Source: Podarcis erhardii
Lineage: Eukaryota
Direction: 5' to 3' (one strand)
Length of the DNA stretch: 64,000 nt
Assembly: GCA_964252035.1 (NCBI GenBank)
Contig: OZ176201.1
Shown here: piece after piece, positions 17,442-62,852 of the stretch
Position numbering within the stretch: position 1 is the first letter of the stretch
Layout of the letters: each line of letters begins with the position of its first letter
Notes under the pieces: model-generated
Seen by the model: the letters and a program-made list of their open reading frames with translations, nothing else
Databases searched by the model: none
Told to the model about the DNA's origin: nothing
Position numbers and translations under genes: made by a program

Positions 17442-20400
17442 CATTTCCAAACCCTTCCATAAATCACAACAGAAGTTTGATTTGTTCCCATTTCCAAAAG
17501 ATCTTCTTGATTGGCTTTTTCTTACAAAGACGTGGTGATAATAGCAGTTCTGGGAGAAGCAAGTTGACTTCCAGGACCTTTTATAGGAGGAATGGGAAAT
17601 ACTTTGTGGTTTTCCACTTGTTTTTGGACTCCAACTCCCATCACCCCTTACCATTGGTTATGCTGGCTGGGGCTGAAGAGAGTTGTGAGTACATAAGCTC
17701 TAGAAGGCCACAAGTTCCCACCATTGCTATCTTACAGTGTGAGGATCATCTATGTACCTGGATCTAAAAGGAAGAGAAGGGTGGCTTGATCTGGCAAACT
17801 GGCAGCATCTGGATGTTTCCCCTAACTCTTTGTCTTCCATATCCCCTACAGGTCCTACAGTGAGAAAGTGGGATAGTAAAGATCTGAGGACCACATGTTT
17901 GATAGTGAAAACGAGTGAGGGTACAGTGGCCATTGTAGACTTGGAAATGCTTTGCTTCTCCAGCGCCTGACATTTATTGCCTTTTCTTAATTTGTTCTTA
18001 ATGTGCCGGCAGTGAACACTTGTGATATATACACAGCACACTCATGAAAAACAAAGGCTAGTATCCAATGCTGATTCTGCACAGGGTATACTTGTTAAAG
18101 TTAATAGACATGACTTGGATTTGTACTTTTCAATGGGTCGATTCTGAATGGAAGTTAGCTGGATACATACAACCCAAGAGTGGTGAGATACATGCTACAC
18201 CAGGGTATCAACATTATTTCAGTGGCTGGTTCATTTCATGTTTGTTTGCTTGCTTTATTTTTTCATCAGTATTAATTCCAAGGCCTACACTTATCTCAAG
18301 CAGTTGCAGCAGCAGCTACACGATACTAGTAGCAGCAGCTGTGGCTTTTGATAATGCTAGGAGTTCTCTCAGCTGTCTTTCTCAACCTTTCAAAACTATC
18401 TTCAAAAACTTAGCCTGGAAAATTTACAGACCACTTCATCTCTGTTTATAGGGCATGTGAATCAGCAAACAAAAACCATCAACAGATCATACCATATAGA
18501 AATGGGGTTCCCTAACTAATGAACCTCAGACAGGCACTCTAAATATGGAATCGTAGGGCAGAACTTCATTATTTTTAGCTTAGTCAGCGCATTACATTAT
18601 ATCCAAGAAACATATAATTAAAATAGCCATTTATGGTGCATTCAGAAAGAGGGGAGGGCAAATTACATCCTTGAGATTACATGGGGGCAAGCACTTAGAT
18701 CTTGCATTTTTGCAAGCCGTACATTCCCCACCCTTTGAGGGGAAAAAATGACTTAGTTGAATTAAAGCAGTGGGCTAATTTGTGTAAATCCAAGGGTATT
18801 TTCTTATATTTGGGTTGTTAATTGGATTGCTTTTCAACATCAATGAACCACAACTTACTTATCGCTTTCACAGCAACCTCGAACAAAAATGAAACCATCA
18901 GATGGCCCTCTCCAAAGAACTGAAAAGGTGCCCTTTCACATATCCTAATACTGTGGTAGAGTATGTCAATGGAGAGAGAGAGAGAGAATATCCCCACATG
19001 TTTCCACAAGCAGAGGGCTACCAAACACAGGGCTGGCTTGCCAAGCTAAAAAGTGAAAAAGGCAAGATGTTTTATTAGACACCACCCTCTGGATGAAAGA
19101 GCGTCATTACATCCGCAGCATCGGGAAAAGAATCAACTGCTAAATCCTGGAAAATTGAAAGGGAAATAAACCACAAGAAAGTAACACATCATGAAGCCTT
19201 TAAGATGCAGCAACACAGAGATACCTGCCCCCCAAATCGAATGGGCCCCCAATTGTAGTCTTAAACCAAGTCAGCTGAATGAATGATGCAAACAGATAAC
19301 GATCAGATTTGGTGCCATCCAAATCATACACAGCTTCCCCCAAGGAATCCTGTGAGCTAAAGTCTACCCCTCACAGGGCTACAATTCCCAGCACCCTTTA
19401 ACAAACTACAATTCCCAGGATTCTTTGGGGGAAAGCCACGTGCTTTAAAGGTATGGTATGGAATGAGAAGCTTCTCATACTATTCGTGTGAAACTGAATT
19501 CCACTCCCAGTGTCTACATAGAAAGAATCATGTGGTACAGCTGTTTTCCAGCCTGCAGGTGACAATTTTGTATGTTTAAATGCTCCCCCGATGGAGGGAG
19601 AACTCTTCCTTTATGCAGGGGGCGAAAGCACCCAAGGAGACGTTTGTCAGGGGAAAGGGGGGAAACCATACTCATTTTCAACATGGAGGGAGTTTTATTT
19701 TCCCATAAGGCGACATTCATCCATGCAAGTTCCCCACTTCCCCCAAAACCTAAAGAGGTATAGTTTAAAAATAGCTTTCTGCATTCTGCTAAATGTGTAA
19801 ACTGGGTCTAAGTTCAACACTGCCTCTAACAGTCTGCACTTAAGCAAAACAATTTATTTGGCTGACCACTGGCTCCAAGCTGGCGGAAATGAATGATGCA
19901 TACTGGGCAGAGGGAGAAATGATAGTTGGGATTGGCATCTTAGATTTATTCCCATCTTTCCTAACGTTTTCCTTGAATAAATAAGAGACAGATTGAAGAT
20001 AAATGGAATAAGTTATAGTGAAAGTCCAAAAAGAGACAAATGTCGACTCAGCACACACTTTGGGAATGGCAATGTTATTTTTCTCTCCGTATAAATGCTG
20101 GCTTTCTCAGAGATACACCAGTGAATGTTGTTGGCGTTTGACAGTTAGTTATCCAAAAAGCACTGCTATGTTAGGCATCACCAAGGAATATCACCAGGAT
20201 AAGCTCAGGCAGGTAGCCGTGTCGGTCTGACGTAGTCGAAATAAATAACTTTCGACCACGATAAACTGAATTGTTAACAATTGTCAACAATTTCCAGGAA
20301 AGTATGACCCAGCAATCTACGCATGAAGGACCCCACAACTCATCTTAATGCCAAAGTTCATTGGTGAACCCCTAGACAATTTCTTCAAAATGGGATTATT

Positions 20401-36406: not shown

Positions 36407-37239
36407 TACCACTGTATAATCAAGGGAAACCAAAAGCCAACTAGAAGGTTCCTTTGGCAGCAACAGGGCAACAACATTTTAATCCTACTTTTCCCCAAAG
36501 ACCTCAAGACAGTGCACACGATTTTCCTGCATTATCCTCACGACAATCCTTTGAGGGAGGTTAGGCCGACTGGCACAAACCCCCTTACAATGCACTGTTC
36601 TGCATGTTGATTCAGAAAGAAACCCCATTCACTCAATAGGACTTACTCCCAGGTAAGTGAGGATAAGTGCATGTGTGGGGATTTGAGGTCAAAGTGCAAC
36701 ACTCTAAGCACTCTGACACTCTGACTCTCTAGACATAAAACCGAAATATAACTAAATTTTGCCTAAAGCAGCAATTGGGATTGGACCGCCCCTGCCTTTA
36801 TTTCACAGTAATTCATAATTACACTTCACATAGCAGAGATTGAGGGCTAGTGCTATAGGGTCCCTTTGCTTTCTGCTCCACTCTTTGCTCTTCTGTAAAT
36901 AACAATTTAACCTCAGATTCATCCTCTGTCTGTCCAAACTCCTGCTATTTTATTTCAGATTACAATCTGGAGATGTGTGCTTATGTCAGCAAATTTACCT
37001 CTCCCCCTCTTCTAATTTCTCCTTTTATATTTCCTTTGCATTCTGCTCCCTGATATATTCTTTCTGACTTATTTTGTAAATGCACTGATAGGTTCTAGCT
37101 TTCAAACCGCTAAGGGGAGGGGGAAAGAGGGGGGTGGGCAAGGAATGTTTATTTTTTATTTTATTTTGTACGTTTACCCACTTTCTAGTTTCTTGCTGGA
37201 AAGCCAAGAAAGGATAAAGTTCTTGGCCTTATTAAATAT

Positions 37240-37560
37240 TTATCAGTTAATTACAATATGTAGATTGTGCCGGTAGGCTATTCATCTTTTGAGGGGGAGA
37301 TACAATAAAATACAGTGGAAAGTTGTGTTATCGTAATTGCCTGATGCCACGGGAAAGAACCAGAGCCGCTGCAATGTGTTTTACATTTATCTGCACCGCC
37401 GCATTTTCATTTTGTGCAGCAAAGCTGCCTCCGTTGTTGTTTCACGGATACTTAATGTTTGCAACCTCGGCATTTTCTTCAGAGGTCTCCTTACAGGAAG
37501 AGAGTTGTTATCACAGCAGCCTCAGCAAAGATCTCTCTCTCTCTTTTCCCAATAAGAAGG
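37240..37560. promoter_or_regulatory. Candidate conserved non-coding element
   Basis: Non-repetitive stretch with a CpG cluster in otherwise CpG-poor DNA. Confidence 0.33.
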
Positions 37561-38920: not shown

Positions 38921-41900
38921 ACCACTTGCAGTTTAAGGTAGAGGATTTCAACCTTTTTGAGTCCACAGCTCCCTTGACCAACTACATTCTTTCTACAGCT
39001 CCCCTGTGGGGCTCAGCGGCCCAGTTAAGTTACCCCTTGCCTGCAGAGCTGGCAGCCTCTCACCCTTTCTCAGACACCTTCCCTTGTGGAGTGTTCCTTC
39101 AGCCTCCTCTCCCCTCTCCAGTTGCTGACCCTGGTCTCTGAGCTGCCTCTCCCCAGACCCCAAAGAGAGGTGCCTCCTCACGCTGCCCCACAGGGACCTG
39201 GAAAGCACCTCCTGGCCAGCCCCAGAGGCACCATTCTCCTGCAGAGCTCATAGCCAGGCCTGCTGCAATAAACAGCTGTGGAAGCCTTTCGGAGGTAGAG
39301 ATGTGAGATAGCATCAGAGGAGGGAGGGAAGGAAAGAGGGACAGAGGCTAGTGTTGCCCGCAGCACCCATCATTCAAGACATCCCAGGGTGCCACAGCAC
39401 ACTGGTTGAAAACAGTTTGTTTAAGGACAAAAGGCACTTGAGAATGTGAAGCAGGACCATTGAATGGTACCACTAGGAGCAGAGTCCCAAAGTCTGGGCA
39501 GGGAGGCCTGGAGGAACAGATTTGTCCCCATGCCTGAGGTTCCCCATGTTTGCCTTTAAATTTGATGCAGTTCCATTTCAGTGAAGAAATGTCCACTGAG
39601 AATCAAAGGCAGGGCAGTTGTGTCACTGTTTCTAAACTGGTTTCACACAAGAAACTTTTGAGGCTAATCGCGACCGTCGAGAAATTTCAGGCTTGGCTTA
39701 TGTAGTCCCATCATGAGATGGGACTGAGTCCGTATCAAGAGCCAAGGGACCCCAATTTGATAGAGTCCCTACTAGATCTGTAAGGGGCTGTGTGGAAAAG
39801 TGGAGGAAGGGTGCCCAGGTGCTGTTGAGCACTTAGACTACAATTCCCATCACTCACAGTCAGTGTAATGAATGATCATGGATTATGAGGGTTATAGTCC
39901 AAACACATCTGGGGACCCAAGGTTGGAGAAGGTTGTTATCTGGAGATAAAAGGTTGTATTCAATGTAGCACTCAGCAAATTGTTCCATTGGCATACAGGA
40001 AACCCCCCATTTATGCGCATTCAATATATGTGTGACTGAGCATACGTGCATTGCACCAAACCCGGAAGTGACCCCAAAAGTCACAAAAACTTCACAAAAT
40101 GGGGCAGAACTGGGCAGGGCAGAGGCAGGGCAGGGATGGCTTTGGGGCATTTTGGGCAAACAGGGCATTTGAAGGGTTTTTCAATAATGTTTCAAATATA
40201 CATGATTTCACTGATGTCTCAGAACATAACCCCTAGGTAAGGGGGGGGGGGTTGCCTGTATTTTTTCCCCTTGCTCAATGGAACAACCTCCCCCTCACCT
40301 TCCCCCATACGTTATGGACGTTCCCCCAACCCTCTAGAGAATATTTGGGAGGTGGTGTGGGACTCATGCAGGGGAGGAAAGCATTGTGCTTGTGCAAAAA
40401 TGTAGCTGAATACCACCCAAGGCATCCCCCACCACCTCCACCCTCACCCAGTCCTCTGCAGTACTTAGTTGCAGTAGCCACTGAGACATGTGGGCCACGT
40501 TGGAAGCAGCTCAGGAGAAACCTGTGTGCTGTTTCCATCTGCTAAAGACCTTCTGGTGAAACCTGTGCTCTACTATGCCCCAGTGCTCACCTTGCCCCAT
40601 GCCAACAATCACCATCCACTAGGGCACAGCATGTGGGTTGCAATGCATTACTGGTGCATGAAAAACAGAAAGATGAGATTTCCAGATGAACATGGGCAGC
40701 TACCTTGTGTTGAATTAAACATGGAGTCTATCTAGCCCACTTCTACTCCAGGGATGGAAAACCTGGTGCCTATGCAGACTGCTGTTCCCATCAACCCCCA
40801 TCCAGCATGAACAATGATCAGGCACAATGGGAGCTGGAGTCTAACCACATACTCATCCCTTGTCTATTTCAGTAGCTCTTCACAGTGTCTGTTGGGCGAA
40901 TATCACAGAATCACAGAGTTGGAAGCATCATCTAGTCCAACCCCTAGCAATGCAGGAACCCTGATCACAGCCATCCCTGGGTGGACTCAAACCACCAACC
41001 TTCTGGTTAACAATGGGCCAGACGCACTGACCCATTGTGACACTGGGCATCTCTCCCAACTTTGCTACCCTATATCCTTTTAACTGGAGATGCTACAGAT
41101 GAAAGCATGAGAACTTCCTCTGAGCTACGACCCCTCTCAATGACCACACAAATATTTTTAGTTATTGCACCAGATTATTTGAGAATTGTGCATTACACCT
41201 TTGGGGTACTTTGCCATGCAAAATACTCTTAAAACATTCCTGTAGACTGTTGCATTCCAAGATCTGTTATTCCACACTTGATAGCAAATAGAACTGAGAA
41301 CATGCCAGGGTGATGATGGTGTTCTCAAATTCTCCTAGAGACAAATTGACTTGGAGGTGGGAATTGCATTTATATTATCGTAGTTCCCTGACTATGTATT
41401 CTGCAGGATTTATGCATTTAATAATACTTCTTAAAGGTGTAAAAATATTGACAGATTGATCTTTAACAACATTTCGCGAAAATTCATCCGCAGGTGAATT
41501 GGGACTGATCCCGCCAAAATTAAACCTTTTTTAAAAATAGTTTAAATTGGAGAGGTTTTAACATGTGGTATAGTGGAATTTTCAGACTGAAACCAAATAG
41601 GCTAGTAAGTGCTAAATATTGACTGAATTTTAAAGTGAAATCAGACAATGTTTGAAATTCACAGCATCACACTTGAATTTTTATATGTTTATTTTTGCGT
41701 CTGTATTTCAAATTTGACCAAAAAATTTCATTTCAGATTTAGCACTTTCATTCTAACAGGGGCAACTGATGCTGGGACCTCAACAACTGTGTTTTTAACA
41801 CACACATTAGAGTTTTCTAGATGTTCATACTAGTGAACCAAGGGCAACTGTTAGTCAGCAGGTAGTACAAGGGCAACTGTTTCATATGACCAAAGCCTCA

Positions 41901-43913
41901 AGCTGGGTTATCAGAAGAAACTGGTTCTTTATTTTGGCACCAAAAAAAGCACCTCCCATTACCATGAAACAATGAACGCAGCACCATGCAAGCTGGATTC
42001 TTCTGCAAACTGGACCTTGCATCTTACCACTAAACTCTCTTGACTGATACTTGCCGTAGCAGAAGCTGCTTAAAGGAGGATAGAAGGTCTCACTAACTTG
42101 TAGTCCAAGGAAATGGAAGAGGTTTAATGGAAGGCAGGGGCCAGTTTAAGAGGTGGGGGAGAGAAATGCACAAGCAGGCTAAGCTCCAAAGCTGCATACT
42201 AACTGGGAGATGAAAGAGCTAGAGGCCTTCTGAAGTACGTGCTGTCTCGATGATTAATGGGGGTGAGGGAAGGGTGAGGCCCAGCCCCTAGTAAACTACA
42301 AGATGGCAAAGTGATTCTAAGAACAACAGAGCAGTGTTCATGGAGAAAAGCTAGTCTGCCTACGCCAAGAAAATCTCCCGGTGCTGTTTTTAAAAAGCCT
42401 CTTTATTTCCAGTATCAAAACAGTACATTAAAATAGATGCCAAGAGCCAAGCAATCATTAAAAATAAACCATCGGTGACGTGTAGCGTGCAGTGAAAACA
42501 TTGCTCACTGCTGCAGCAGCGAGGTTGCGAGCTGGTTCTCCCAAGACGCATTCACCAGCCGCGCCTGATGGCAAGACAATAGCCCTCAGAGGCAGCCATT
42601 CACTTGCCCAGGAACTACAACAAGCAGGTGATTTCAATATTGGAGCTGGATCACAGGAGATTTTGTTTTGTTTTGTTTTTTAAGATGTAGGTGTGGAATT
42701 TGAAGTGTTATCTTTTATGTTAGGCATACATTGGAAGATGCTTATTGTCAAAGATTTAGTGCATTCTGGAGATATGGGCTCTCTGCGAAAGGGTTTCTTG
42801 GAGTGGATTTCCCTGATAGCTCTAGGTTCTTACCTAGGGGTGGTAACACCCTGGCAAGGGATGAAAGAGGAAGGAGGAATATGCATCTTGCCTATTCTTG
42901 CTGCATCGGCACCACAGTTCTGTCAGAAAATATTTTGATGAGGCTTAGACAATAGCAACATACGGCAATGGCTTTTCAAACTATGATCTATGGTACCTGG
43001 GGTTCATCAGTGGCTCACTGGGATTTCTCAGTCAGAAGATCAGTACTGATGGGCAAGCTTTCTTGGAGAAGCAGCTTGACTACCACTGCCAATCTTCTCC
43101 TGGGCTAGACCCCTTTCACAGGAGTTCCGAGTCTAGTCTTGGTTCACATGGGGCCATAGTGAGGACCCACCAATGCCAATGGGCACTAGCCACCAGGACT
43201 ATTATGGTTGGTAAATGGTCATCTGTGTTTGCCTGTAGAAAGATATTGGACCTTAAAAGATCCCTGCTATTAGGGCAAGGTGTCTGCTCTTCACCCTGTG
43301 AAGTGCCAAACCTTTGGAATGGAATAGGCAAAGAACTAGACTTGGGAATATCCACACTAAGGCTGCAATTCTACACCTACTCTTCTAGGAGTAAACCCAA
43401 TTGAACTCAACAAGATTTGCTTCTGAGTTGACTTGTATGGGGTGGCAAGGTTAGCTAAAGTCTTTCACTTTGTGAAATGAATGCCTGAAAACCAGAGCAA
43501 CTAGGATCAGCCTGATTTCTTTCTTTTCCGAGAGGATCATGAGGCCAATAGCTGCTGAACAACTGAGACCCACACTGCCTTCCTTTGCGATTTCATTCAC
43601 AAAACCCTCTTTACAAAACAGATATTTAAAAATCCAGTGCATAGACTGCCTTAGGTTTGGTTTGAAGACAGCATTGCATTGAGTGAATTATCAACTTTGC
43701 AGCATCCAGCTGCAGCCCCTCCCCCACCAATGAATGTCCAGTACAGTTAAATAAGTGGAAGGTAATGGGTGGGCAGATAGGAGTGGTGGGCGGTTGGAGG
43801 GGGGTTGGGGGAGAGAAATGCTGTTGGTTGCACTTAGAGGGTTTTTTCTTTTTTAATGAGATAATAGGACTGTAGCAATTTCCCCTGCTTGGTTTCCATG
43901 GCAGAGAGAGCCC

Positions 43914-44593
43914 TCACAGATGCATAAGATTTACAGGTCCCTGAGAATCTCCCTGAGGCACAGGATGTGTTGTTAAATCTGTGTAAATGGGATGTGAGTT
44001 GGACAGCCCAAGCTGGTGATGACTGGGGATTTCGGCAACACAGCTGTAGTCCAGGTTTGCAGAGGAACAGTCAGGGAAGCTGAAGAGTGAGTCAGCCTCG
44101 GGCATATTTCCCAGGTAATTTTCTTCCACTTCACTTGGACTCCCTTGCAGAACTGGAGGTCCATAATGATGACTGTCTCCTTGCAGAGAAAAGGGGCCAT
44201 ACTCCAAGGAGATGGACGTTAAGGGGCTGTCAAAGAGAGGGTCTGTATAACTATATACCCCTCCCTGGGCCTTGCTACATGAACTTGGTGTGGCCAACTC
44301 ATACTCAGCCTCCATTTGACTGAAATAGTCACTCACTTGAGGACTTTTGCTCGGGGACTTCCCAATGGTCCCCTTGACCCTGCTGTCTTTCTTATACTTC
44401 ATCCTTCTGTTCTGGAACCAGATCTTGATTTGTCTCTCAGAGAGCCTCAGAAGCCGGGCCATTTCCAGCCTGCGTGGCCGGCAGAGGTATCTATTAAAAT
44501 GGAACTCCTTCTCCAGTTCCACCAGCTGCGTTTGGGTGTAGGCTGTGCGCACTCTCTTGGATGAGGAGAGACTTGGTGGAGAGGAGCTGGGGT
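43914..44593 (-). CDS. HOXC3: Hox3 (probably HoxC3) second coding exon with homeobox
   Basis: The acceptor TTTTCTTCATTTAG|AC at 44594/44593 splices in frame (G|AC=D) to give [70 protein letters not shown]. The C-terminus [23 protein letters not shown] resembles the Hox3 tail YTDL...QGRIQEAPKLTHL. TGA at 43916-43914. Total CDS 328+680=1008 nt. Confidence 0.9.
44382..44561 (-). other. Homeobox (60-aa homeodomain)
   Basis: Translates to SKRVRTAY...[14 protein letters not shown]5, I47, Q50, N51 and M54 are intact, and LCRPRR is diagnostic of group 3. Confidence 0.97.
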
Positions 44594-44688
44594 CTAAATG
44601 AAGAAAATGAAAAAAGTCAATTCAGCTTGATCCTTAATGACTTTGCAAGGAATAGATGTATTACCTCACAAAATCTTGTACCTGGGAG

Positions 44689-44689
<1 letters not shown>

Positions 44690-44738
<49 letters not shown>

Positions 44739-44740
44739 TA
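44690..44740. repeat. (AAT)n microsatellite in the Hox3 intron
   Basis: Direct observation. Confidence 0.97.
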
Positions 44741-44755
44741 ATGTATAGTGTACAT

Positions 44756-44893
44756 CAGAGGTGGGGAACTTGTGGTCCTTCTGATGCTGCTGGACTACAG
44801 GTCCCAACATCTCTATCATTCTCCTTGCTGGCTGAGGCTGATGGGAGTTGGAGTCTGATGACATCTGGAAGGCCACAGATTCTCTACCCCAAT
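44756..44893. mobile_element. Decayed palindromic MITE in the Hox3 intron
   Basis: CAGAGGTGGGGAAC...TTCTCTACCCC with an ACTACA...GGAGTTG internal palindrome; one of many such copies in the window. Confidence 0.55.
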
Positions 44894-45605
44894 GTACAAG
44901 CATGCATGTTATGTGTGGCTCAAACTCAGAGAGATGTTAGAGCTGAACCAAAACAACTCACAGATTTTGGCAAATGTGTTCAGTTGTGTTGCCCTTTTTT
45001 GGTGGTCCCACCCTCACTTCCACAAGGCACCTGGCAAGAAATGTTTGCTTATTTTACCCTCAGTGAGTGACATCACACAACCCAATCTGATTGACTGGAT
45101 AGTATTGAATGTTGCATCATCCTGCTAATTGTGTAATCTGTGCCTGCGTTGGATCACTGATGTAATTCATACAAGATGGAAGAAAAGTCAGAGGGGTAAA
45201 GGTGCCACCCCCACCTCACCCCCCAAAAAAAAAACCTCAAGAGAAATAATGGTAACTTAATTGGAAAACGTGAGTATTTATGTTCCCCCATAATTGCTAG
45301 TTTCCACTAAAAATTGGAAAATGGAGAATATTTGGTTCAGCTCAGTAACATTCTGCATTCTTTGAAAGTCAGTTTGGAGGGTCTTGTGTTTCCATTTGCA
45401 AAGAATGGAAATGTTCTGATCCGTTTTATTCTATGCTATGCTATTATGTTTGTCTATCTCTTTGTCTCTACATCCAGTCTATATCCTTCCTATGCTAATG
45501 GATTAATCTAAATGAAAACCTAATGTTTAATAAGACATATGGCTATTCTCATAGTACCGGGAGGTTGGGGTTGGTAAAGGACCTATAAAGAATATACTAG
45601 AGCAA

Positions 45606-45606
<1 letters not shown>

Positions 45607-45640
<34 letters not shown>
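45607..45640. repeat. (AT)n microsatellite in the Hox3 intron
   Basis: Direct observation. Confidence 0.97.
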
Positions 45641-45642
<2 letters not shown>

Positions 45643-45963
45643 CTTACTGAATTCCTCAAGTGGAAGCCTAGTTGCTCCTATTATCCCAATATAAGATGGG
45701 ATATAAACATAAGCAAATAAAAAATATAGAAGTAAGTTATTGTCCAGAAAATGCTCTGAAGACACATGCTGTGGTTCAACCGGTAAAGTTAAGAGTGTCT
45801 GGTAAGCAGTCTCTGGACGGAAGACCACCAGAGAACCCTCCATAATGTGTGCTTAGTTCCTTGGAGGAAGGACATGGTATAAATTAAAGTACTGCATGGT
45901 GTAAGCTAAAGTACTGCATGTGAACACTTATTTGAAAGTGCAAGGAAAGCTATAGCCTAGATC

Positions 45964-46091
45964 CATGGTAGCCAATGATGTGCATTCCAGATGCTGGTGT
46001 TTGGCTACAACTCCCATCATCCCTGACCATTGCTGTCTGGGACTGGTGGGTGTCTATCAACCTCGTGAGGGCACCATGTTGGCTACCATTG
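45964..46091. mobile_element. Decayed palindromic MITE in the Hox3 intron, about 50 nt from the donor
   Basis: Inverted ends ATGGTAGCCAA / TTGGCTACCAT; CTACAACTCCCATCATCCCTGACC core. Confidence 0.55.
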
Positions 46092-46143
46092 GATAGATAC
46101 ACATTGGAATCAAGCATGGGAGACGATAGATAAAACAAGGTAC

Positions 46144-46471
46144 CTGAAGATGGAAGGTTGTTCTTCTGCTTGCTGCTGTGTCTTGTTTCTTTCATCCAAG
46201 GGAAGACTTGTTTTGGTAAATGGCTAACATGTGCCTTGCTAGTGCCATTGGTAACCAATGGAGACTGTTGTAATTTTGAGGTCTGATCATTGGTGTTCCC
46301 TAGAGATGCCTGTTCGGTGCCTTTTTGGCCTGTTGGAGACCTTGTGGATGTTTCTGGCTCCTGGTGTACCAGTGGAGCTGGAAATTGTTGCTGACTAAAG
46401 GAATCCCTTCTAATGGGATCCAAATTGCTTTCTGAGGAATCCTGGTCATCTTCATGATGAGCTTTTTGCAT
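46144..46471 (-). CDS. HOXC3: Hox paralogy group 3 gene, first coding exon (probably HoxC3)
   Basis: ATG at 46471 opens MQKAHHED (Hox3 proteins start MQKA). The hexapeptide QVFPWMKETR has FPWMK at 46204-46190. The donor CAG|GTACC at 46144/46143 follows SSG, a phase-1 junction as in other Hox3 genes. Assignment to the C cluster is inferred from divergence, short length and the absence of a Hox2 neighbour. Confidence 0.88.
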
Positions 46472-46488
46472 TTCCTGTTCTTGTCTGA

Positions 46489-46510
46489 CTGAAGGGGCAG
46501 GGAAGGAGAC
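46489..46510 (-). promoter_or_regulatory. Candidate splice acceptor just upstream of the Hox3 start codon
   Basis: Minus strand GTCTCCTTCCCTGCCCCTTCAG|TCAGAC, 17 nt before the ATG. Hox3 paralogues typically have upstream non-coding exons. Confidence 0.5.
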
Positions 46511-47320
46511 AGATACCTTGAAATGAATGTGAAAGGAATCCAGACAGAGCTCCAGTTATTACCACTGATGAAGGATCCTCCTCACCCATGTGTTCCAAAA
46601 GCTAAAGAGAAACATCCGAAGTAAACATGCCCACATCTCAAAGCAAAAACATTTACCGACCATTCTGGCCTCTGTCCAGAAAAAGGAACCCACCAAAAAG
46701 AGAGAGAGCAAGAATCATGAACTTTAAACAAAGACAGTCTTTTGAGTTTCAACATGTTTAGAGTTGAAACTATTTTGCTCTCAGAAATTATCCTCCGCAA
46801 ACATTGTCAAGTATACACATTTAATGTCTGTATTTGCTGGAGTTGATTTTAATATTTGACAGCATTTGACTGCTGGTACATAGTGGTTTTAGTGCTTGAC
46901 AGTATTTGATAAGTGGAACACCAAAGCAAAAATATTTAGAGAAATCTTTACCAGCGGTCGCTACCGTCAGTCATATGGATAAGATCAAATATTTATTGTT
47001 CAATATGGACATGTCTGTGATGTTTAATACAGCTAAAAGCCCCTTAACTTAAACAAGGTGATATGGCTTCCAACAAGATCTAACTTTCAGCTTTCTATGT
47101 ATGTTTTATTTATTGTATAGGCTAAGATTTATTTTTATGTATAATTTTATATATCATTTATGTTAATATGTTTCTGTTTGGTTGCCTTATTAATGAATTT
47201 GAAAACTGACACATAGTTATGTCTGATTTTATATTGTGTTTGAGAAACAGCATAATATACGTAAATAGTAGTTAGAATGATATTTAATGATTGAACAAGT
47301 GGGGCATACAACAAGATTGT

Positions 47321-49837: not shown

Positions 49838-50436
49838 AGCTAGAGCCTACTGTTCTTTTTTAATACTGAAAAGCTGGAATAATCAAGGGGGTGTATCCTA
49901 AACATTTCCTGAGCAAGTCTCTCTACGGTACTGCTCTGTGGTCTCCTTTGAAATATCAAAACTTGCGTGTTGGGGAAACCTGTCTTTGAAGTTCATGTCA
50001 CTTAAAGATGCCTTCGCTGCTCACCATACATTCCCCAGTCCTACCCAGAGATTTGTAAGCCTGGGTCTGAATCCCATTGAAATGCATCTTGTCACAGCTT
50101 GCAACATTGTCCACAATACCTTCTGCCAGCCCTTTGGTGATCCATCTTAAATAACCCTACACAGACAGAAAGAGTGCTGCTCATTGCTTCTGTTATTATG
50201 TTCCTCAGGAACCCTGGAATCAATTCCTTTACTCTTTCATTACTGAAGAAGTGCTACATCTAATTTCAGTGAATGAGGGATTCACCCGAAAGCACAGGTG
50301 GGGAACCTCTAGCCCACCATAGGTTGCTGGACTCCAACTTCCATGAACCCCTGTCTGCATGGACAGGGATGATGGGAGTTGGAGTCCAACACCATCTCAA
50401 CAAATTCTCCACCCATGCCCTAAAGACTGATAGCTA

Positions 50437-51357: not shown

Positions 51358-52975
51358 ATCTCACATTTCTAAACATATTCTCAAAACATTTTGGCGCACA
51401 TCTAAAAATATAAAAGTGAAGTGGTTTGGGGAGGCACATCATAGTACCATCGGTGACAAAAATCTGTTTAGCTTCCAATGAGGATTGGACCGTGGATTTG
51501 TGAGGAAGCAATGACTAATCAAAGGCAGGTGGTGTGTCTGTATAATCCCACTAGCATAGGAAATGCTGCATGGCAGCAGAACGGTGATTGCACTGCAGAG
51601 AGGTCTGTATTTCATAATTGCTATTGATGCCTAAGTTAGAAGTAATGGCTTGTTTCATGTAAAAAAAAAAACAGTACTGGAATTATTTGTGGAATAAATA
51701 TTTGGCTTGCCATCAATACGGTATCTATTTATATTAAATTTACCCAGTGCAAATAGATGAAAATAAGCCAGCAGCTTTTCCTAACATCTCTCCCCCCCCC
51801 CCAACTCAGTGACCTGAAGAGTAAAGGTCTATATAAGTTCCGCAGTGGGGAGTTTTTATTTAAAATGAAGCAATATTCTCCTGGAAGAGACAAGCAGAGT
51901 CTATTGGGAAAATCATTGGCCTGTAGAAATGGTGGCAGGCATACAAAAGAGCTCAGAAAGGTGTATTGGATTTAGCAAGAGCAATGGGAGCTAATGATAT
52001 TAAGTTGGCTGGTAAGCTATGTGAACAGCTGTAACCTCACTGATGGAAATGAATGGGCCATCGATACGCTGTCCTCAGACAAATTCATAGGCAGAGCAGT
52101 GTGTGCTGTGCACTGGGGGTTGGGGGTGGGGTGGTGGGGAATCTGCAGCAAAGTAACCCCAATTTTGCTCCAAGGAAAACTGTGTGCTGAAGCCTGCTTC
52201 CCTTATATTTATTTATTTTCCATAATTCATTTGATTTAAATAAAGGGGAAGGGCACAGAACTATGCAATAATACAGCCCTGATCATGATCCTATCAGCTG
52301 CCTCTCTAGCTTTCACCCAGCGTTGCTTACTCAGTTTCAGCCCTATTCACCACAGTCATGAGGGATAGAATCATGGTTTGCTTTCTAAAATGAAAACAGA
52401 GAATCCCAGCAGGTTGTGTTCTGCGCTCAATTCTGTGCTTTTGTTAACTGGCAGAATACACACAAGTCTTGCACACAAGCTGGCTGCCTGCTGAAGTCCA
52501 AGGGCATTTTTAAAACCACAGGTGGATAAATGAGTTTACATAAACTGTGTTTTGTCCATCATCATCACAAGCAGTGTGTAAGAATCCGAGCTTTTAAAAT
52601 GCCACAGGTCAACTTAATGTGTTTCGACCTATGTATATTGCATCTTAGAGGACAGGGGCTGTATTAAAGTTGTGTGTGATATCTGATTTAAGATAGCACA
52701 CTGCTTACTTATGAGGGGTGCAAAAAGTAGCTGTGACTAAGGTACCATTATAAGGACTGACAAACCTGAATCTCATTCATTACAGTTTGACTTTTGCTGG
52801 CTTGTACTAGAATAATTGCATTATGTTTACATGTGTGATATTGATATAGATAGTGCTATTTTTCTAGAAAAATAGGTGTTGGAACTCACCATGAATGCCT
52901 CCCTTGTTCTCTTATAATGGCAAAGGTGCCCACCTGAGAGGTGCTAGAACTGCCTTCCAGTGAGTTCTGACTGAA

Positions 52976-53714
52976 NNNNNNNNNNNNNNNNNNNNNNNNN
53001 NNNNNNNNNNNNNNNNNNNNNNNNNNNNNNNNNNNNNNNNNNNNNNNNNNNNNNNNNNNNNNNNNNNNNNNNNNNNNNNNNNNNNNNNNNNNNNNNNNNN
53101 NNNNNNNNNNNNNNNNNNNNNNNNNNNNNNNNNNNNNNNNNNNNNNNNNNNNNNNNNNNNNNNNNNNNNNNNNNNNNNNNNNNNNNNNNNNNNNNNNNNN
53201 NNNNNNNNNNNNNNNNNNNNNNNNNNNNNNNNNNNNNNNNNNNNNNNNNNNNNNNNNNNNNNNNNNNNNNNNNNNNNNNNNNNNNNNNNNNNNNNNNNNN
53301 NNNNNNNNNNNNNNNNNNNNNNNNNNNNNNNNNNNNNNNNNNNNNNNNNNNNNNNNNNNNNNNNNNNNNNNNNNNNNNNNNNNNNNNNNNNNNNNNNNNN
53401 NNNNNNNNNNNNNNNNNNNNNNNNNNNNNNNNNNNNNNNNNNNNNNNNNNNNNNNNNNNNNNNNNNNNNNNNNNNNNNNNNNNNNNNNNNNNNNNNNNNN
53501 NNNNNNNNNNNNNNNNNNNNNNNNNNNNNNNNNNNNNNNNNNNNNNNNNNNNNNNNNNNNNNNNNNNNNNNNNNNNNNNNNNNNNNNNNNNNNNNNNNNN
53601 NNNNNNNNNNNNNNNNNNNNNNNNNNNNNNNNNNNNNNNNNNNNNNNNNNNNNNNNNNNNNNNNNNNNNNNNNNNNNNNNNNNNNNNNNNNNNNNNNNNN
53701 NNNNNNNNNNNNNN
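52976..53714. other. Assembly gap (N run)
   Basis: Direct observation. Confidence 1.
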
Positions 53715-56259: not shown

Positions 56260-57992
56260 TGTTAGCATACCCTTATCGGTATTTGGTACCGAATCACCAC
56301 AAGCATCTATCCACTCAGTCATTCCCACCCCCACCCCCCACTACAAATCTCATGGCCAACCGGGGGGGGGGGGATATATATAGGGCACAATCCAACAAAG
56401 TATTGAAGCTGGAAGGCTGGGTTTCTATGAGGCTAAGCGCGTTTAATTCTGAACTGGGCTGTGGCCGTTCTGTTTAGGAACCGAGTTAATTTTGTTGAGA
56501 TGACTGCCCCGATGCTAAACTTGGAAGTAAAAGTCCCACTGATAACTGTGCAAAAAGGGCCTTACTTCCAAGCAAATGCATGTTTTAAGGTGGTGGTGAC
56601 TGACAGCTGCCCATCATTCAAATGGATTGGATGACCCAGCTATTGAGAAGCAGGCTGGATGAAACATATATCAACGGGAATTTGCATTTGGAAGTAGAGT
56701 CCTTTGAAATCAAGGCTGCAATCAAGCCTTAGATGAGTCCCGTTGGAATCCACAGGACCGTTAGTTTCCAAGCAAACGTACGGAAGGAGCCCAGCGCTAA
56801 AGTCGCAGGTTAATTTAGCTGTGGACGAAATTAAGGAAATGCCACCGAACTGACGCGCTGAAGGTTGGGGGATTTAGTTCTGGCCTGAAATTCAGGTCCA
56901 TCTTAAACCATTTTTCCTCTAGAGAAGTTTCAACGGGACTTGCTTGCAAACGGTTTCAAACGTAGTTATATATCTGTGTTAAAACTGCCTCCTTCTATAC
57001 CCCCCAAATATGTGATTATTATAAAGGAGACTTTTTTTCTTTTCTTTTTTGGGTACTGCGGGTAATTCATGCTATTTTGAACCTTGGTTTTGAAGGGGGA
57101 TAACCCCCTGATTTCTCTGCAGCATAAACCACGCGATAAAACAAAACAGAAACAAAAAACAAAACAAAACAAAAACTTTCGCTCTCTGGGAAATTAGCAT
57201 GATATTATCAGTCCCATAATGCTTTATCTTGTAGACAAATATGGGCATCCCACAGTCCCATACAGTATGCAATGGGCTCCTCGTTTATCTATTTATTATT
57301 TAGCTATTTCGGTCCATTCATTTCTAGAGAATGCTGTAGGCTTGGGGGTACTTGGCAGGCAAGTCACGTTATGCAAATCTAGGCTTGATGATTCTGCAGT
57401 ATCCTTTAAAAAAAAAACCCAAAAAAACCACGCCACCACTATTGCTTGTATTTTTAACGATTTTTTAAGGGGGGGCGTCTCAACAGCATTTAGGGTGGAA
57501 GGGTAAGGGAGGGCAGAACCAATAATGCAATGTCTCCCCCCACCCACCCCAGCAGAAGAAAGGAGTCCTAATTTCTCTGAGATTTAACACGATGCGAGTT
57601 AGAACCGGCTCCTTCCATATTCGCCCCTCAGACCCCCGCCCCAATCCAGGTTAGCAACAAAGGAAGATCGGGTGGGGAAAGGAGGGTGATGAAAGTGGTG
57701 GGGTTGGGGTTTTTTCTGTGCTTCTAAGCCCCTCTTCTCCTTTTGTCTAAAGACCCTCGTGTGGGCGCGCTCCGTGCGTTGTTACAGATACACACACGCA
57801 CATATGAAATGCAAATATTATACATTATTATATGTGCCTGTTACGCAACCCCCACGCGCACCTACACAAATATATATTTATATATAGTATCTATAATCAA
57901 TTAGATCCCTGATTCCTGCTCATCCAAAAGCAAATCGGGGTGTTGATTATTTTTTTTTAAGGTTCAATTATAAACGATTTTGCACTAGAGAA

Positions 57993-57994
<2 letters not shown>

Positions 57995-58040
<46 letters not shown>
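57995..58040. repeat. (GA)n microsatellite next to the RARE
   Basis: Direct observation. Confidence 0.97.
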
Positions 58041-58106
58041 GCATTTGGAATAGTCACACTTGTCAAGTGAGACCATCTTTTAGCTCTCAGAAGCAGCAAA
58101 TCCATG

Positions 58107-58123
58107 TGAACTCTGGGTGAACC
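58107..58123 (-). promoter_or_regulatory. DR5 retinoic acid response element
   Basis: Minus strand GGTTCA-CCCAG-AGTTCA: two RGKTCA half-sites spaced by 5 nt, inside CpG-rich sequence between Hox3 and the expected Hox4. Confidence 0.8.
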
Positions 58124-58135
58124 AAGATTGAAGCA

Positions 58136-58143
58136 ATAAATCA
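58136..58143 (-). promoter_or_regulatory. Pbx-Hox bipartite motif
   Basis: TGATTTAT on the minus strand, 12 nt from the RARE. Confidence 0.45.
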
Positions 58144-59100
58144 TCGCTACAAAAGCCGGCTGCTGCATACGAGTTCCAGACCCCTTACCTTTAACGCTTT
58201 CACGGGCGAAGACTGAAAAGCAGAGCTACAAAAGTTCACATCTCTGCGCGTAGCCTAAACAAGGAGGGGGGGGGACTGTGCATCTAGGGGGCTAGGCGGA
58301 GAGGGAGGCTTTTTTTTTAAGGGGGGAGGGGGGTCGTTGTTGAAGAGTAGGGGTGGTATTGGCTTAATAGTAGCAGATTATGCTGCTTTGAGTGGTGGTT
58401 AGGAGCGGTGGGGTAAGGAGGGGAGGGCTCGATGCTCGGAAGGGAGACGGGGACGTAATCGAACGTCATTCAACAAAGACAAGGGATGAGAAAGAATCGG
58501 ATGGGGAATGCGGGGCGGGGGGAGGGAGGGAGGGAGAGAAGAGGCCGATTAAGGGAAAGGAAACCGGACAGCATACATGAATCTGGGGGAGGTGGGGGGG
58601 ATTGCACCATTTCCCCCCCATTTTTTATTTTTTTTATTTTTAAAAATGGAAATGCATGGATAAAATCTTGAATGATCAATGGGCCCATTCATTTGGAGAC
58701 GGTTCGCAGGGCATCAAGGCCGCCATCCTATGCGCTGGGAGCGAGCACGGCTGATTCCTGGAGGACTTCCTTCCGAGGAAACATGCCGGTGCAACACACA
58801 CACACACCCCGGAATTGTAGAACAGTTCCGTGGGGGGTTGAATCTATGTCCGGAGAAGAGCCTGGCGGTCTGCCTCAACTCACTGCCTCAACTCCCTTAT
58901 ATATCATATAGGCGATCTTGTGCATAAGTCCCCCACTCAAATAAATAAATAAATAAATCTCCCACACACCAAGTGACTCCCCCGTTTGAAACTAAAGCAC
59001 AGCTAGGAGATTTGGGGTGAGGGTGGTGTGTGGGAGAGAAAAAGTTTCACGCACATGCAGGCGAGGCGCACACACATCTCTATAGTTGACTAATCTATTA

Positions 59101-59120
59101 TGACAAACAATATGATGGAT
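59101..59120 (+). promoter_or_regulatory. Meis/Prep core plus Pbx-Hox motif
   Basis: TGACA (59101-59105) followed by TGATGGAT (59113-59120). Confidence 0.5.
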
Positions 59121-61164
59121 ATAGTTTATGTTAATCGCCATGCCCTTTCCTCTAGAATTTAACTGTAAGTTAATGGACACCGGAAACTAGAATTCTACAT
59201 GGCTTGCTAATGGGTTTAGGTATTAGCAAGTTCTAACGATGCATACAAATGCACTTGTCTCTGTAGGCTGTCTTAAGATTTATGGCTCTTTTGCCTTCTG
59301 TAGCTGTAAACAAGGGGGGGGGGGGAGAGAGAAGAGAAAGAGAGAGAAAAGGGAAAGAAATCCCAGCCCCTGTGCAATTTAGCACCTCCAAGGAGCCGTT
59401 TCTTTCACTTTCTTCCTTTATTTAAAGAAATACCCCAGGTTGTGGGAGGGAGTTTTGACTCCGTCTGCAACTTTCCTCGCCCCCCCTCCCTACTAAAATG
59501 CTCGTCTGTTGGGCTTCATTATGTTCTTACGTTCCCCTTGCCCACGCTTCCATCAAGGGGGACAAGGCACTGAAACCCACTTAGAAAGTCATAATGGCCA
59601 TAATAAAGACTCCGCTGCAAACGGGGTTTCGACTCCTACTCGACGGCGATGAAGGATGATTGTGGGTTCAGGTTCTACCGGGAGGGAGGGAAGGATGGGG
59701 TGGGGGTGAGGAGCGGTTGTTAGAGAGGAAAGTTTCGGGGAGAAAAATACCCCCCCAAAAAAACACATAACAACAACTACTGCAACAATAACAACAAGCC
59801 GACCCTGCAAACTCTAACAAAGGAACAATGAAGCTTTGCATCTCATGGTGTCTGGGGTGGGGTGGTGGAGTTAAGAATGTAACTTTGTATGATTTAAACC
59901 GCCCCCCTCCCTTCCCGATTCATTTCTGTTGGATGTCTTCCACAGGACCCGAAACCACGAAGATCTCGCTTAGTTTGGCTGGGGAAGGAAGAGGAGGAGG
60001 AGGAGGAGGAAGAGAAGAAGAAGAAGAACGCTGTGTGTGTACCCAAAGGAAAAAATATACCGGGGTGTCTCTGTCGGAAGGTAAAATGGCCTTATACATA
60101 ACGCAGTTATCTAGGTGACAGGAGAGATGCTTTGCTGAAGCTTTTTCCCGTAGCTTCAGTTTCGCGCCTGCGTCTTTTTCCAGGGTTGCAAGACGGTTGC
60201 CCAAGCCTGGTCGATCCGTTGGACAGAGGAACAAAATAAGGACGCATATATCGAAATTATTTCATTGATGAGTATATTGTTTTGTGGAATGCATTATTAT
60301 TGCTATTGTTATTGTTATTATTAGGATGGGCCCGGGGTGGGGAGAAGATCCAGGAAGGTCTAAAAGAAGAAGAAATTAGTAGGGAATTGATTGTGTTTGC
60401 TTCGAGACCGGTGGGAACCGCTTGCGAAGGTTTTCTCAGTCTTTGGGCGTGTTGTTGATAATCTAGCAACGGGGTGAAAACGTTCTCTCGGAAGCAGAAC
60501 CCAAAGTTCGCAAGTTGATAAAGAAAAAGAAGGGGAATTAACCGGCCTGCTCCCTTCCGCAGGGTTTATTAGCCTTCCGCACTCGCGCACCAACCGTCTC
60601 CAGCAAATTTATATTTAGCCAGGCCTCTAATGTATGTTTCAGCGGCGAGAAAAACAATCAAATCCTTTTCATCGATGTGTAACTTCGCTTTAACTTGGAT
60701 TTAAAACATCGTTTAGCCTCTGCTTACATTTAGAAGCGCGTGGGCGCTTTTTTTAAAAAATCGCTGTTCCATCCTATCCTCACTTCCAAATTAACTTATA
60801 GGGGTGTTTTTTGAGAGGGAGGGCAGAGTTATGAGGCATTTGATCAAAGCGATTTACATCGACCGGACCGCTTGACGGCATTGCCAGGATCTTATCTGAG
60901 ATCTGATCTTTAACAGGACCAATGCAATATTGTTTGCGTTCCCGGATTGTTTCCTTATCATAATCGCTTATTGACAAGAAACGGAATTAGTTTTCATTTA
61001 TGTTTAACACATTACTTTTTTAATTTTATTTTTTTTAAAGGGGGGAGCGTAATGATTCCTAGAGATAGTGGGATTCATGTCAGAGGAGTTCGTTTGCTAG
61101 CCAAAGTTATGTCTTTGTCACATAATGTATGTTAGATATTTGCAGGAGTGCACCACGAATACAA

Positions 61165-61294
61165 NNNNNNNNNNNNNNNNNNNNNNNNNNNNNNNNNNNN
61201 NNNNNNNNNNNNNNNNNNNNNNNNNNNNNNNNNNNNNNNNNNNNNNNNNNNNNNNNNNNNNNNNNNNNNNNNNNNNNNNNNNNNNNNNNNNNNN
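61165..61294. other. Assembly gap (N run)
   Basis: Direct observation. Confidence 1.
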
Positions 61295-62185: not shown

Positions 62186-62852
62186 CCAAAACAGAGTAAA
62201 AACAAACAATTACTGAACCAAAAATTAAAAAAAGGGAGTCTGGGGTTAGGCTGGTTATTCCAGTCACTTGAAACGAGCCTGCATTGCTTGGAACGCTCGC
62301 TTTGAGAATAATAAAATATTTAAAACTCCAAGTCAACCTTTTTCCTATTTATTGCCGTGTATAATTCAACATTACCGCGTATTAATAAGCCAATAATGAT
62401 AATCTCTATAGGAAAAGCATGCTAGCTGGGCCGCTTTTATGGCCGCCCTTATCCTTTCTAATGACCTTTGGCTCAGCAGAGTAATAACTCATTACGGAAT
62501 GAGCAATTGTCTGGAGTGCCTTAAATACCTCGCGATCTCTCTCTCTCTCTCTCTCCCTCCCCCTCTACACGCCGGACACTTCCAAGAAGAGGTACTGTGT
62601 GTGAGAGTGTATGATGGAATCGTCTTCCCTGTCTTGAGACAGCTTGGAGGGAAAGGAAGAGGAGGAAGGGCCACAAAGAGAGTCTTCTTCAGTTCCCTGT
62701 GCAGCTGTGCCATAGAAGAAGCCCCAGGACTTCTTGGTGATAAAGGTGCTGTTCACCTGGTTTTTCTGGATCTTGACATTTTATGCTCCCCTGGCTTTTT
62801 TGGCAACAGCAACTCCCAAGTAGCAGCACCCACTGTGGACAGATAAATAATT

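Follow-up and report, generated by a model that had tools for sequence, protein, structure and literature searches.

The question raised by this locus is which paralogue of Hox group 3 is encoded by a two-exon gene at positions 43914–46471 (minus strand) of a 64,000-nucleotide stretch of the genome of Podarcis erhardii (GenBank assembly GCA_964252035.1, contig OZ176201.1; this whole stretch is hereafter called the window), and whether that gene is still kept in working order. Squamates keep HoxC3, a gene that was lost in mammals, birds, turtles, and crocodiles (PMC3038165), and both HoxC3 and HoxC1 have been reported in the HoxC cluster of the lacertid Darevskia valentini (PMC9498476). An earlier note on this DNA, made from the letters alone, had proposed that the gene is HoxC3 and had described HoxC3 as missing from mammals and birds, which agrees with the published pattern of loss. 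Our analysis indicates with high confidence that the gene is the lizard orthologue of HoxC3, i.e., the paralogue group 3 member of the HoxC cluster, and that it is kept as a functional protein-coding gene. The evidence for its identity is presented first, followed by the evidence for rapid change in its protein and for the selection acting on it.

Structure of the Gene and Its Protein

The gene lies on the minus strand and consists of two coding exons, 46471–46144 and 44593–43914, separated by a GT–AG intron of phase 1. Coding exon 1 (46144–46471) starts with the ATG at 46471 and contains 109 codons and the first base of a codon split by the intron (G/AC, Asp), with the donor GT at 46143–46142. 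The intron (44594–46143) is 1550 nucleotides long, and its acceptor AG is at 44595–44594. Coding exon 2 (43914–44593) completes the split codon with two bases and adds 225 codons and the stop codon TGA at 43916–43914. With 328 and 680 nucleotides, the exons add up to 1008 nucleotides, corresponding to 335 codons and the stop. The ATG, the donor (CAG/GTAC), the acceptor (TTTAG/AC), the intron phase, and the TGA are identical in Zootoca, Eublepharis, Crotalus, Elgaria, Anolis, and Tiliqua.

The gene and its protein have the features that define the Hox3 group: an Antp-class homeodomain, an (F/Y)PWM hexapeptide, the DUF4074 domain, and an intron between the hexapeptide and the homeodomain. The hexapeptide, FPWMKE, which is the PBX-contact motif, is encoded by exon 1 (46187–46204, minus strand), an exon in which no Pfam family was matched. 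The homeodomain (44382–44561, minus strand) comprises 60 amino acids, ends with MKYKKDS, and was recognized by Pfam PF00046 (5.5e-21), and the C-terminal Hox3 domain DUF4074 (43926–44090, minus strand) was recognized by PF13293 (4.2e-15; 56 bits vs. a cut-off of 22.3). In an alignment of C3, A3, B3, and D3 proteins, residues F92, P93, W94, and M95 of the hexapeptide were invariant or nearly so, and the DNA-contact residues of the homeodomain (R3, R5, I47, Q50, N51, and M54) were invariant. The accessory Hox3 motif at the N-terminus, MQK-x-x-YY-(D/E)-N...(F/Y)GG, is reduced to MQKA in the protein, which begins MQKAHHEDDQ. This loss is derived within the orthology group, and is no argument against membership of Hox3. 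The earlier note had therefore placed the gene and its complete, spliceable open reading frame of 335 amino acids correctly to the base, and the hexapeptide, homeodomain, and C-terminal motif that it had described were all recovered. Its description of a Hox3 N-terminus held for the MQKA, but not for the YY..FGG portion, which is absent from all squamate copies.

Orthology to HoxC3

When exon 2 was used in a word search, the best matches (97%) were the lacertids Podarcis raffonei, Zootoca vivipara, and P. muralis, followed by every sampled squamate family (73–90%) and then by coelacanth, salamanders, frogs, and caecilians (50–54%). Among the sequences at 50–54% were the Ichthyophis gene named "HoxC3" by its authors and the "Homeobox C3" of Xenopus tropicalis. 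True D3, B3, and A3 proteins ranked lower, at 43–48%.

Two maximum-likelihood trees, sampled without the tuatara, gave the same picture. In a quick tree that included exon 2 of the window (LG+C20), the window grouped with Podarcis and Zootoca (support 96) within a squamate clade (100), which belonged to a C3 clade (100) holding the named Xenopus and Ichthyophis genes, with A3 (98), B3 (99), and D3 (93) elsewhere. A careful tree, for which only public proteins were used (LG+G4; ultrafast bootstrap / Shimodaira–Hasegawa-like approximate likelihood-ratio test), recovered the squamates (100/100), the C3 clade (100/100), A3 (100/99), B3 (100/99), and all D3 (100/100). In addition to the squamates, its C3 clade held Xenopus hoxc3, the Ichthyophis gene, and the copy of the coelacanth, whereas A3, B3, and D3 lay outside it. 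When the squamate sequences were forced to group with D3, the log-likelihood difference was 70.3, and the approximately unbiased (AU) test rejected this arrangement (p = 1.6e-5). The HoxC3 identity that had been proposed from the letters alone was thus borne out by phylogeny.

Comparison with known genes is consistent with this placement. The HoxC3 genes of other squamates (Anolis carolinensis, Naja atra, geckos, Dibamus, Darevskia valentini, and Chamaeleo calyptratus) represent the same gene, with 73–97% identity over exon 2, identical start, splice, and stop sites, a common MQKALHEDDQ start, and, in a lacertid, a location 3′ of HoxC6 and a HoxC5-type gene. The P. erhardii protein differs from them by His instead of Leu at residue 5 and by the absence of two amino acids beyond the 10 and three that are missing in lacertids. 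HoxC3 of Xenopus tropicalis, Ichthyophis bannanicus, and Latimeria has the same hexapeptide, homeodomain, DUF4074, and two-exon plan and falls in the same clade, but is 386–394 amino acids long, with 50–54% identity over exon 2. These three also keep the YY..FGG, QK(R/K)Y, and CDPHPTYTDL motifs, all of which have been changed or lost in squamates. HoxA3, HoxB3, and HoxD3 share the domain architecture and the DNA-contact residues, but form separate clades and are longer (about 400–440 amino acids) and far more conserved.

Position in the HoxC Cluster

The linkage of the gene could be followed in a relative. In the Zootoca vivipara record OY735903.1, HoxC6 is located at 113,309,875–113,311,421 on the plus strand, and a gene beginning MSSYVANSFYKQ, which we take to be of the HoxC5 type from its N-terminus and its Hox5-like homeodomain, follows 3.6 kb downstream on the same strand. 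The HoxC3 orthologue, whose protein is 97% identical to that of the window over exon 2, is also on the plus strand, at 113,406,978–113,409,698, i.e., 97.1 kb to the 3′ side of HoxC6, as colinearity would predict. HoxC4 was not located in OY735903.1, and at eight squamate loci the 10 kb on either side of the orthologue held no other homeobox.

In the window itself, neither a motif search nor a homeodomain hidden Markov model run on all six frames found a second homeobox, including HoxC1. The 10 largest other open reading frames of the window matched no Pfam family, and a search of the window with Rfam returned nothing at gathering scores. The distance from the ATG to HoxC4, on the upstream side, must exceed 17.5 kb, and a HoxC1, if there is one, must be over 43.9 kb away on the downstream side. 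A lone homeobox in 64 kb is consistent with the large gaps between HoxC4 and HoxC3 and between HoxC3 and HoxC1 that have been reported in other animals (PMC4470032). The flanking genes, which the earlier note had suggested as a check, are therefore those of the HoxC cluster as far as the Zootoca orthologue is concerned, situated 3′ of HoxC6 on the same strand, whereas the window holds no neighboring homeobox.

Rapid Remodeling of the Squamate Protein

The squamate proteins differ from the other HoxC3 proteins at several places, and their stem branch is very long. The stem branch of the squamates was estimated at 0.72 (LG+G4) to 0.89 (C20) changes per site, and the branches within squamates at 0.03–0.23. 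In Tajima-type relative-rate tests with coelacanth as the outgroup, the number of unique changes was 64 in Podarcis vs. 36 in Ichthyophis (p = 0.005) and 55 in Podarcis vs. 24 in Ambystoma (p = 5e-4), and the test for Crotalus gave 82 vs. 29 (p = 5e-7). HoxA3 of the same species gave 11 vs. 14, which was not significant. Similarly, the identity between Podarcis and Eublepharis was 97% for A3, which is 406–443 amino acids long, and 81% for C3, in line with the earlier statement that A3, B3, and D3 are longer and more conserved. In all squamates, MQKALHEDDQ (MQKAHHEDDQ in P. erhardii) stands in place of MQK..YY.N..FGG, the region before the hexapeptide is shorter, QK(R/K)Y has disappeared, and CDPHPTYTDL is replaced. 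The homeodomain of all squamates has Val, Leu, or Ile at position 4, Arg or Gln at position 36, and Arg at position 39; in the window, these squamate-specific changes are A4V, N36R, and N39R.

These changes may be read in more than one way. It is possible, although we would not favor it, that a gene with the ancestry of HoxC3 was given a new use at the base of the squamates, in a burst of substitutions that were fixed by selection and gave the protein a squamate-specific activity. The N-terminal activation motif would then have been exchanged for an acidic, Ser-rich stretch, Arg would have been acquired at homeodomain positions 36 and 39, and the C-terminal motif would have been altered. This agrees with a long stem followed by short, constrained branches within squamates, with squamate-wide substitutions at positions that are otherwise invariant in Hox3, and with the lack of such acceleration in A3. 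However, the burst could equally come from relaxed constraint followed by re-stabilization, and synonymous sites are saturated for branch-site testing. Equally tentative is the view that squamate HoxC3 is no mere relic, but went through one burst on the stem and was then held by purifying selection for about 200 million years.

Selection and Expression

Constraint on the present-day gene was estimated as omega (the ratio of non-synonymous to synonymous divergence) with the pairwise Nei–Gojobori method, comparing the window with other squamates. Omega was 0.01–0.03 in the homeodomain, with a synonymous divergence (dS) of 0.56–1.6 in comparisons beyond Zootoca. It was 0.13–0.24 in exon 2, 0.15–0.31 in the linker, 0.09–0.57 in the C-terminal core, and 0.26–0.48 in exon 1. 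For the DUF4074 domain, omega was 0.09–0.36, at an unusually low dS. All indels among the squamate copies are in frame: lacertids lack 10 amino acids before the hexapeptide and three after the homeodomain, and P. erhardii lacks two more. Such values speak for a gene kept by purifying selection, and not for a drifting relic. In the veiled chameleon (Chamaeleo calyptratus), HoxC3 has been reported to be present and expressed (PMC11398420).

We also considered whether the gene only looks intact and is in fact decaying, i.e., whether constraint has been relaxed by redundancy with A3, B3, and D3 and the gene is heading for the loss seen in other amniotes. Its evolution is faster than that of A3, as the identities and relative rates above indicate, its Hox3 N-terminal motif has been lost, and both the lacertid deletions and the further deletion in P. 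erhardii point in the same direction, as does the gene model of Rhineura floridana, the C-terminus of which is frameshifted. In contrast, the frame, the splice sites, and the stop are intact in every sampled squamate family over about 200 million years, an omega of 0.01–0.03 in the homeodomain at such dS values is impossible by relaxed drift, and no indel breaks the frame. Decay is therefore very improbable. The frameshift in the model of Rhineura, an amphisbaenian, replaces the usual end of the protein (NLMHL) and removes the conserved C-terminal motif; it is either real or an assembly error, and the resulting tail corresponds to an alternative frame of the window, a 75-amino-acid open reading frame at 43973–44200 (minus strand).

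A separate observation concerns the 64 C-terminal codons (43917–44108), which include DUF4074. In the same species pairs, the homeodomain and linker had roughly twice their synonymous divergence (dS 0.43–1.1 vs. 0.14–0.37) when the window was compared with Elgaria, Tiliqua, Eublepharis, Anolis, and Crotalus, a small sample with about 47 synonymous sites. Constraint at the nucleotide level, overlapping the coding sequence, may account for this.

Several points weigh against the conclusion that the gene is a functional HoxC3. The Hox3 N-terminal motif has disappeared and the squamate stem is very long, so the biochemical role of the protein may differ from that of other Hox3 proteins. HoxC4 is absent from the window, and the linkage was seen in a relative only. 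Between the window and Zootoca, exon 1 carries 11 non-synonymous and two synonymous changes, numbers that are too small to interpret but that fit weak constraint on the N-terminal part. Candidate sequencing runs contain 0.24–0.29 of the words of the stretch, which is approximately the share of the two exons, and that they are RNA is only a guess. Two short public contigs from Logan (for the proteins P0007 and P0238) derive from genomic DNA and read through the intron, and provide no evidence of splicing. Set beside the trees, the AU test, the linkage in Zootoca, and the intact frame under strong homeodomain constraint, these points leave a functional HoxC3 as the very probable reading.

Predicted Mode of Action

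By homology, the HoxC3 protein would bind TAAT-type DNA through its homeodomain, in which the base-contacting residues are all kept, would pair with PBX cofactors through the hexapeptide, and would act as a transcription factor in antero-posterior patterning. The hexapeptide, linker, and homeodomain of the lacertid orthologue align to the Hox chains of the HoxB1–Pbx1 (1b72) and Scr–Exd (2r5y) complexes, and cooperative binding with PBX is expected because of this alignment. The likeness of the orthologue to such Hox–PBX/Exd complexes (1b72, 2r5y/2r5z) is one of sequence only. Transcription would probably start from upstream non-coding exons and would probably be influenced by a conserved upstream element of the retinoic-acid type, which is described below. 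Binding to DNA and PBX, expression, control by retinoic acid, and a role in development are thus predicted properties of the lizard gene.

Public Names of Squamate HoxC3

In public databases, the gene goes by many names. The RefSeq and UniProt labels of squamate HoxC3 include Hox-D3 or Hox-D3-like, Hox-D3a-like, "Hox-D3" (Anolis), "Hox-B3-like" (Rhineura), and "Hox-C6 isoform X3" (Pogona). That the gene is a divergent copy of HoxD3 (or of HoxA3 or HoxB3), as the automatic names "homeobox protein Hox-D3-like," "Hox-D3a-like," and "Hox-B3-like" imply and as the rank of D3 as the nearest non-C3 paralogue by score might suggest, is refuted to the point of being negligible by the trees, in which separate true D3 (Pogona and Gekko) and A3 (Podarcis and Eublepharis) proteins of squamates fall into clades of their own, by the AU test, and by the linkage of the Zootoca orthologue to HoxC6 and the HoxC5-type gene. 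As statements of orthology, the automatic names are wrong, because the trees and the AU test exclude D3.

The naming problem extends to other vertebrates. The HoxC3 proteins of coelacanth and many amphibians are likewise labeled Hox-D3-like or Hox-D3a-like. In Kryptolebias marmoratus, a 403-amino-acid protein named "Hox-C6a" consists of the HoxC6a first exon and homeodomain joined to a Hox3-type DUF4074. This reflects either chimeric gene modeling or read-through transcription inside a Hox cluster.

Untranslated Regions and Intron Repeats

Coding exon 1 would be an internal exon, judging from the letters before the ATG. An acceptor AG at 46518–46517 would open a 5′ untranslated start of this exon at 46472–46516 (minus strand), and a second acceptor-like AG lies at 46490–46489. 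The arrangement TTCATTTCAAG/GTATC...CCCCTTCAG/TCAGACAAGAACAGGAA-ATG is conserved in six squamates. The first acceptor, 45 nucleotides upstream of the ATG, is the one chosen in the public models of Eublepharis, Anolis, Elgaria, and Tiliqua, and the second is that of the public Sceloporus model; both are putative acceptors in P. erhardii. Public squamate models place the first exon 0.3 to 30 kb upstream, in sequence that shows no conservation at the protein level. Because the frame in Crotalus is broken before the ATG, the letters preceding the ATG are non-coding, and the conserved start is the methionine of MQKA. At the other end, the start of the 3′ untranslated region (43684–43913, minus strand) showed blastn identities of 75–83% to the sequence after the stop in five squamates.

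The intron contains an (AAT)n run, a (TA)n run, and a repeat resembling a short interspersed nuclear element (CTACAACTCCCATCATCCCTGACC...) approximately 50 nucleotides from the exon 1 donor. Within the intron, repeats of these kinds were located at 44690–44745, 45610–45640, and 46005–46028, and related copies occur elsewhere in the window (17629–17652 and 50361–50384). Repeats have been reported to invade the Hox clusters of squamates, and those of the intron fit that account. Runs of N occupy 52976–53714 and 61165–61294.

Conserved Non-Coding Sequences Around the Gene

Collinear non-coding blocks with 72–95% identity, conserved from gecko to snake, were found on both sides of the gene. The upstream blocks are located at 62249–62596, 59058–59669, 57954–58599, and 51478–52531, and the downstream blocks at 41770–42668 and 36917–37549. 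Against Anolis, the identity was 92% for 62249–62564 and 95% for 59079–59325. None of these blocks had a Pfam or Rfam match, and they probably represent enhancers or non-coding exons in the HoxC4–HoxC3 region.

One of them stands out by its content. A direct repeat 5 (DR5) element resembling a retinoic acid response element, GGTTCACCCAGAGTTCA, is located at 58107–58123 (minus strand), 11.6 kb upstream of the ATG, and a Pbx–Hox-type site, TGATTTAT, lies 20 nucleotides before it. Neither sequence differs between the window and the five other squamates in which the module was found. The surrounding block of about 170 nucleotides, within 58060–58260 (minus strand), is almost invariant in comparison with a gecko, a snake, an anguid, a skink, and an anole. 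It also contains a donor-like AAAG/GTAAG, which is not the donor of the public gene models that could be mapped. Retinoid inputs and auto- or cross-regulatory inputs are known around Hox4 and Hox3 genes, and the combination of DR5 and Pbx–Hox sites suggests that both kinds of input may act here. The DR5 element is thus a candidate regulator of HoxC3 or HoxC4.

Significance of HoxC3 in Squamates

The survival of HoxC3 in lizards and snakes has been in print since about 2009–2011, its presence in a lacertid has been published as well, and the inventories of known Hox genes are unchanged by our results. What the analysis adds is the exact coordinates of the exons, clear purifying selection, the correction of entries mislabeled in many lizards and snakes (Hox-D3-like and, once, a Hox-C6 isoform), and the acceleration on the squamate stem together with the loss of motifs. 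An incomplete literature search found no functional study or rate-burst analysis of squamate HoxC3, which is weak evidence of absence, and we consider the fast, remodeled squamate protein to be an only modestly new angle. These data will be useful to those who plan to study the expression of the gene in lizards or to knock it out there. Few Hox genes set squamates apart from all other living amniotes, and HoxC3 is among them. If it was indeed re-purposed at the base of the squamates, it would carry out a Hox function specific to this lineage, perhaps in the patterning of the squamate axis, that is beyond the reach of the model amniotes.

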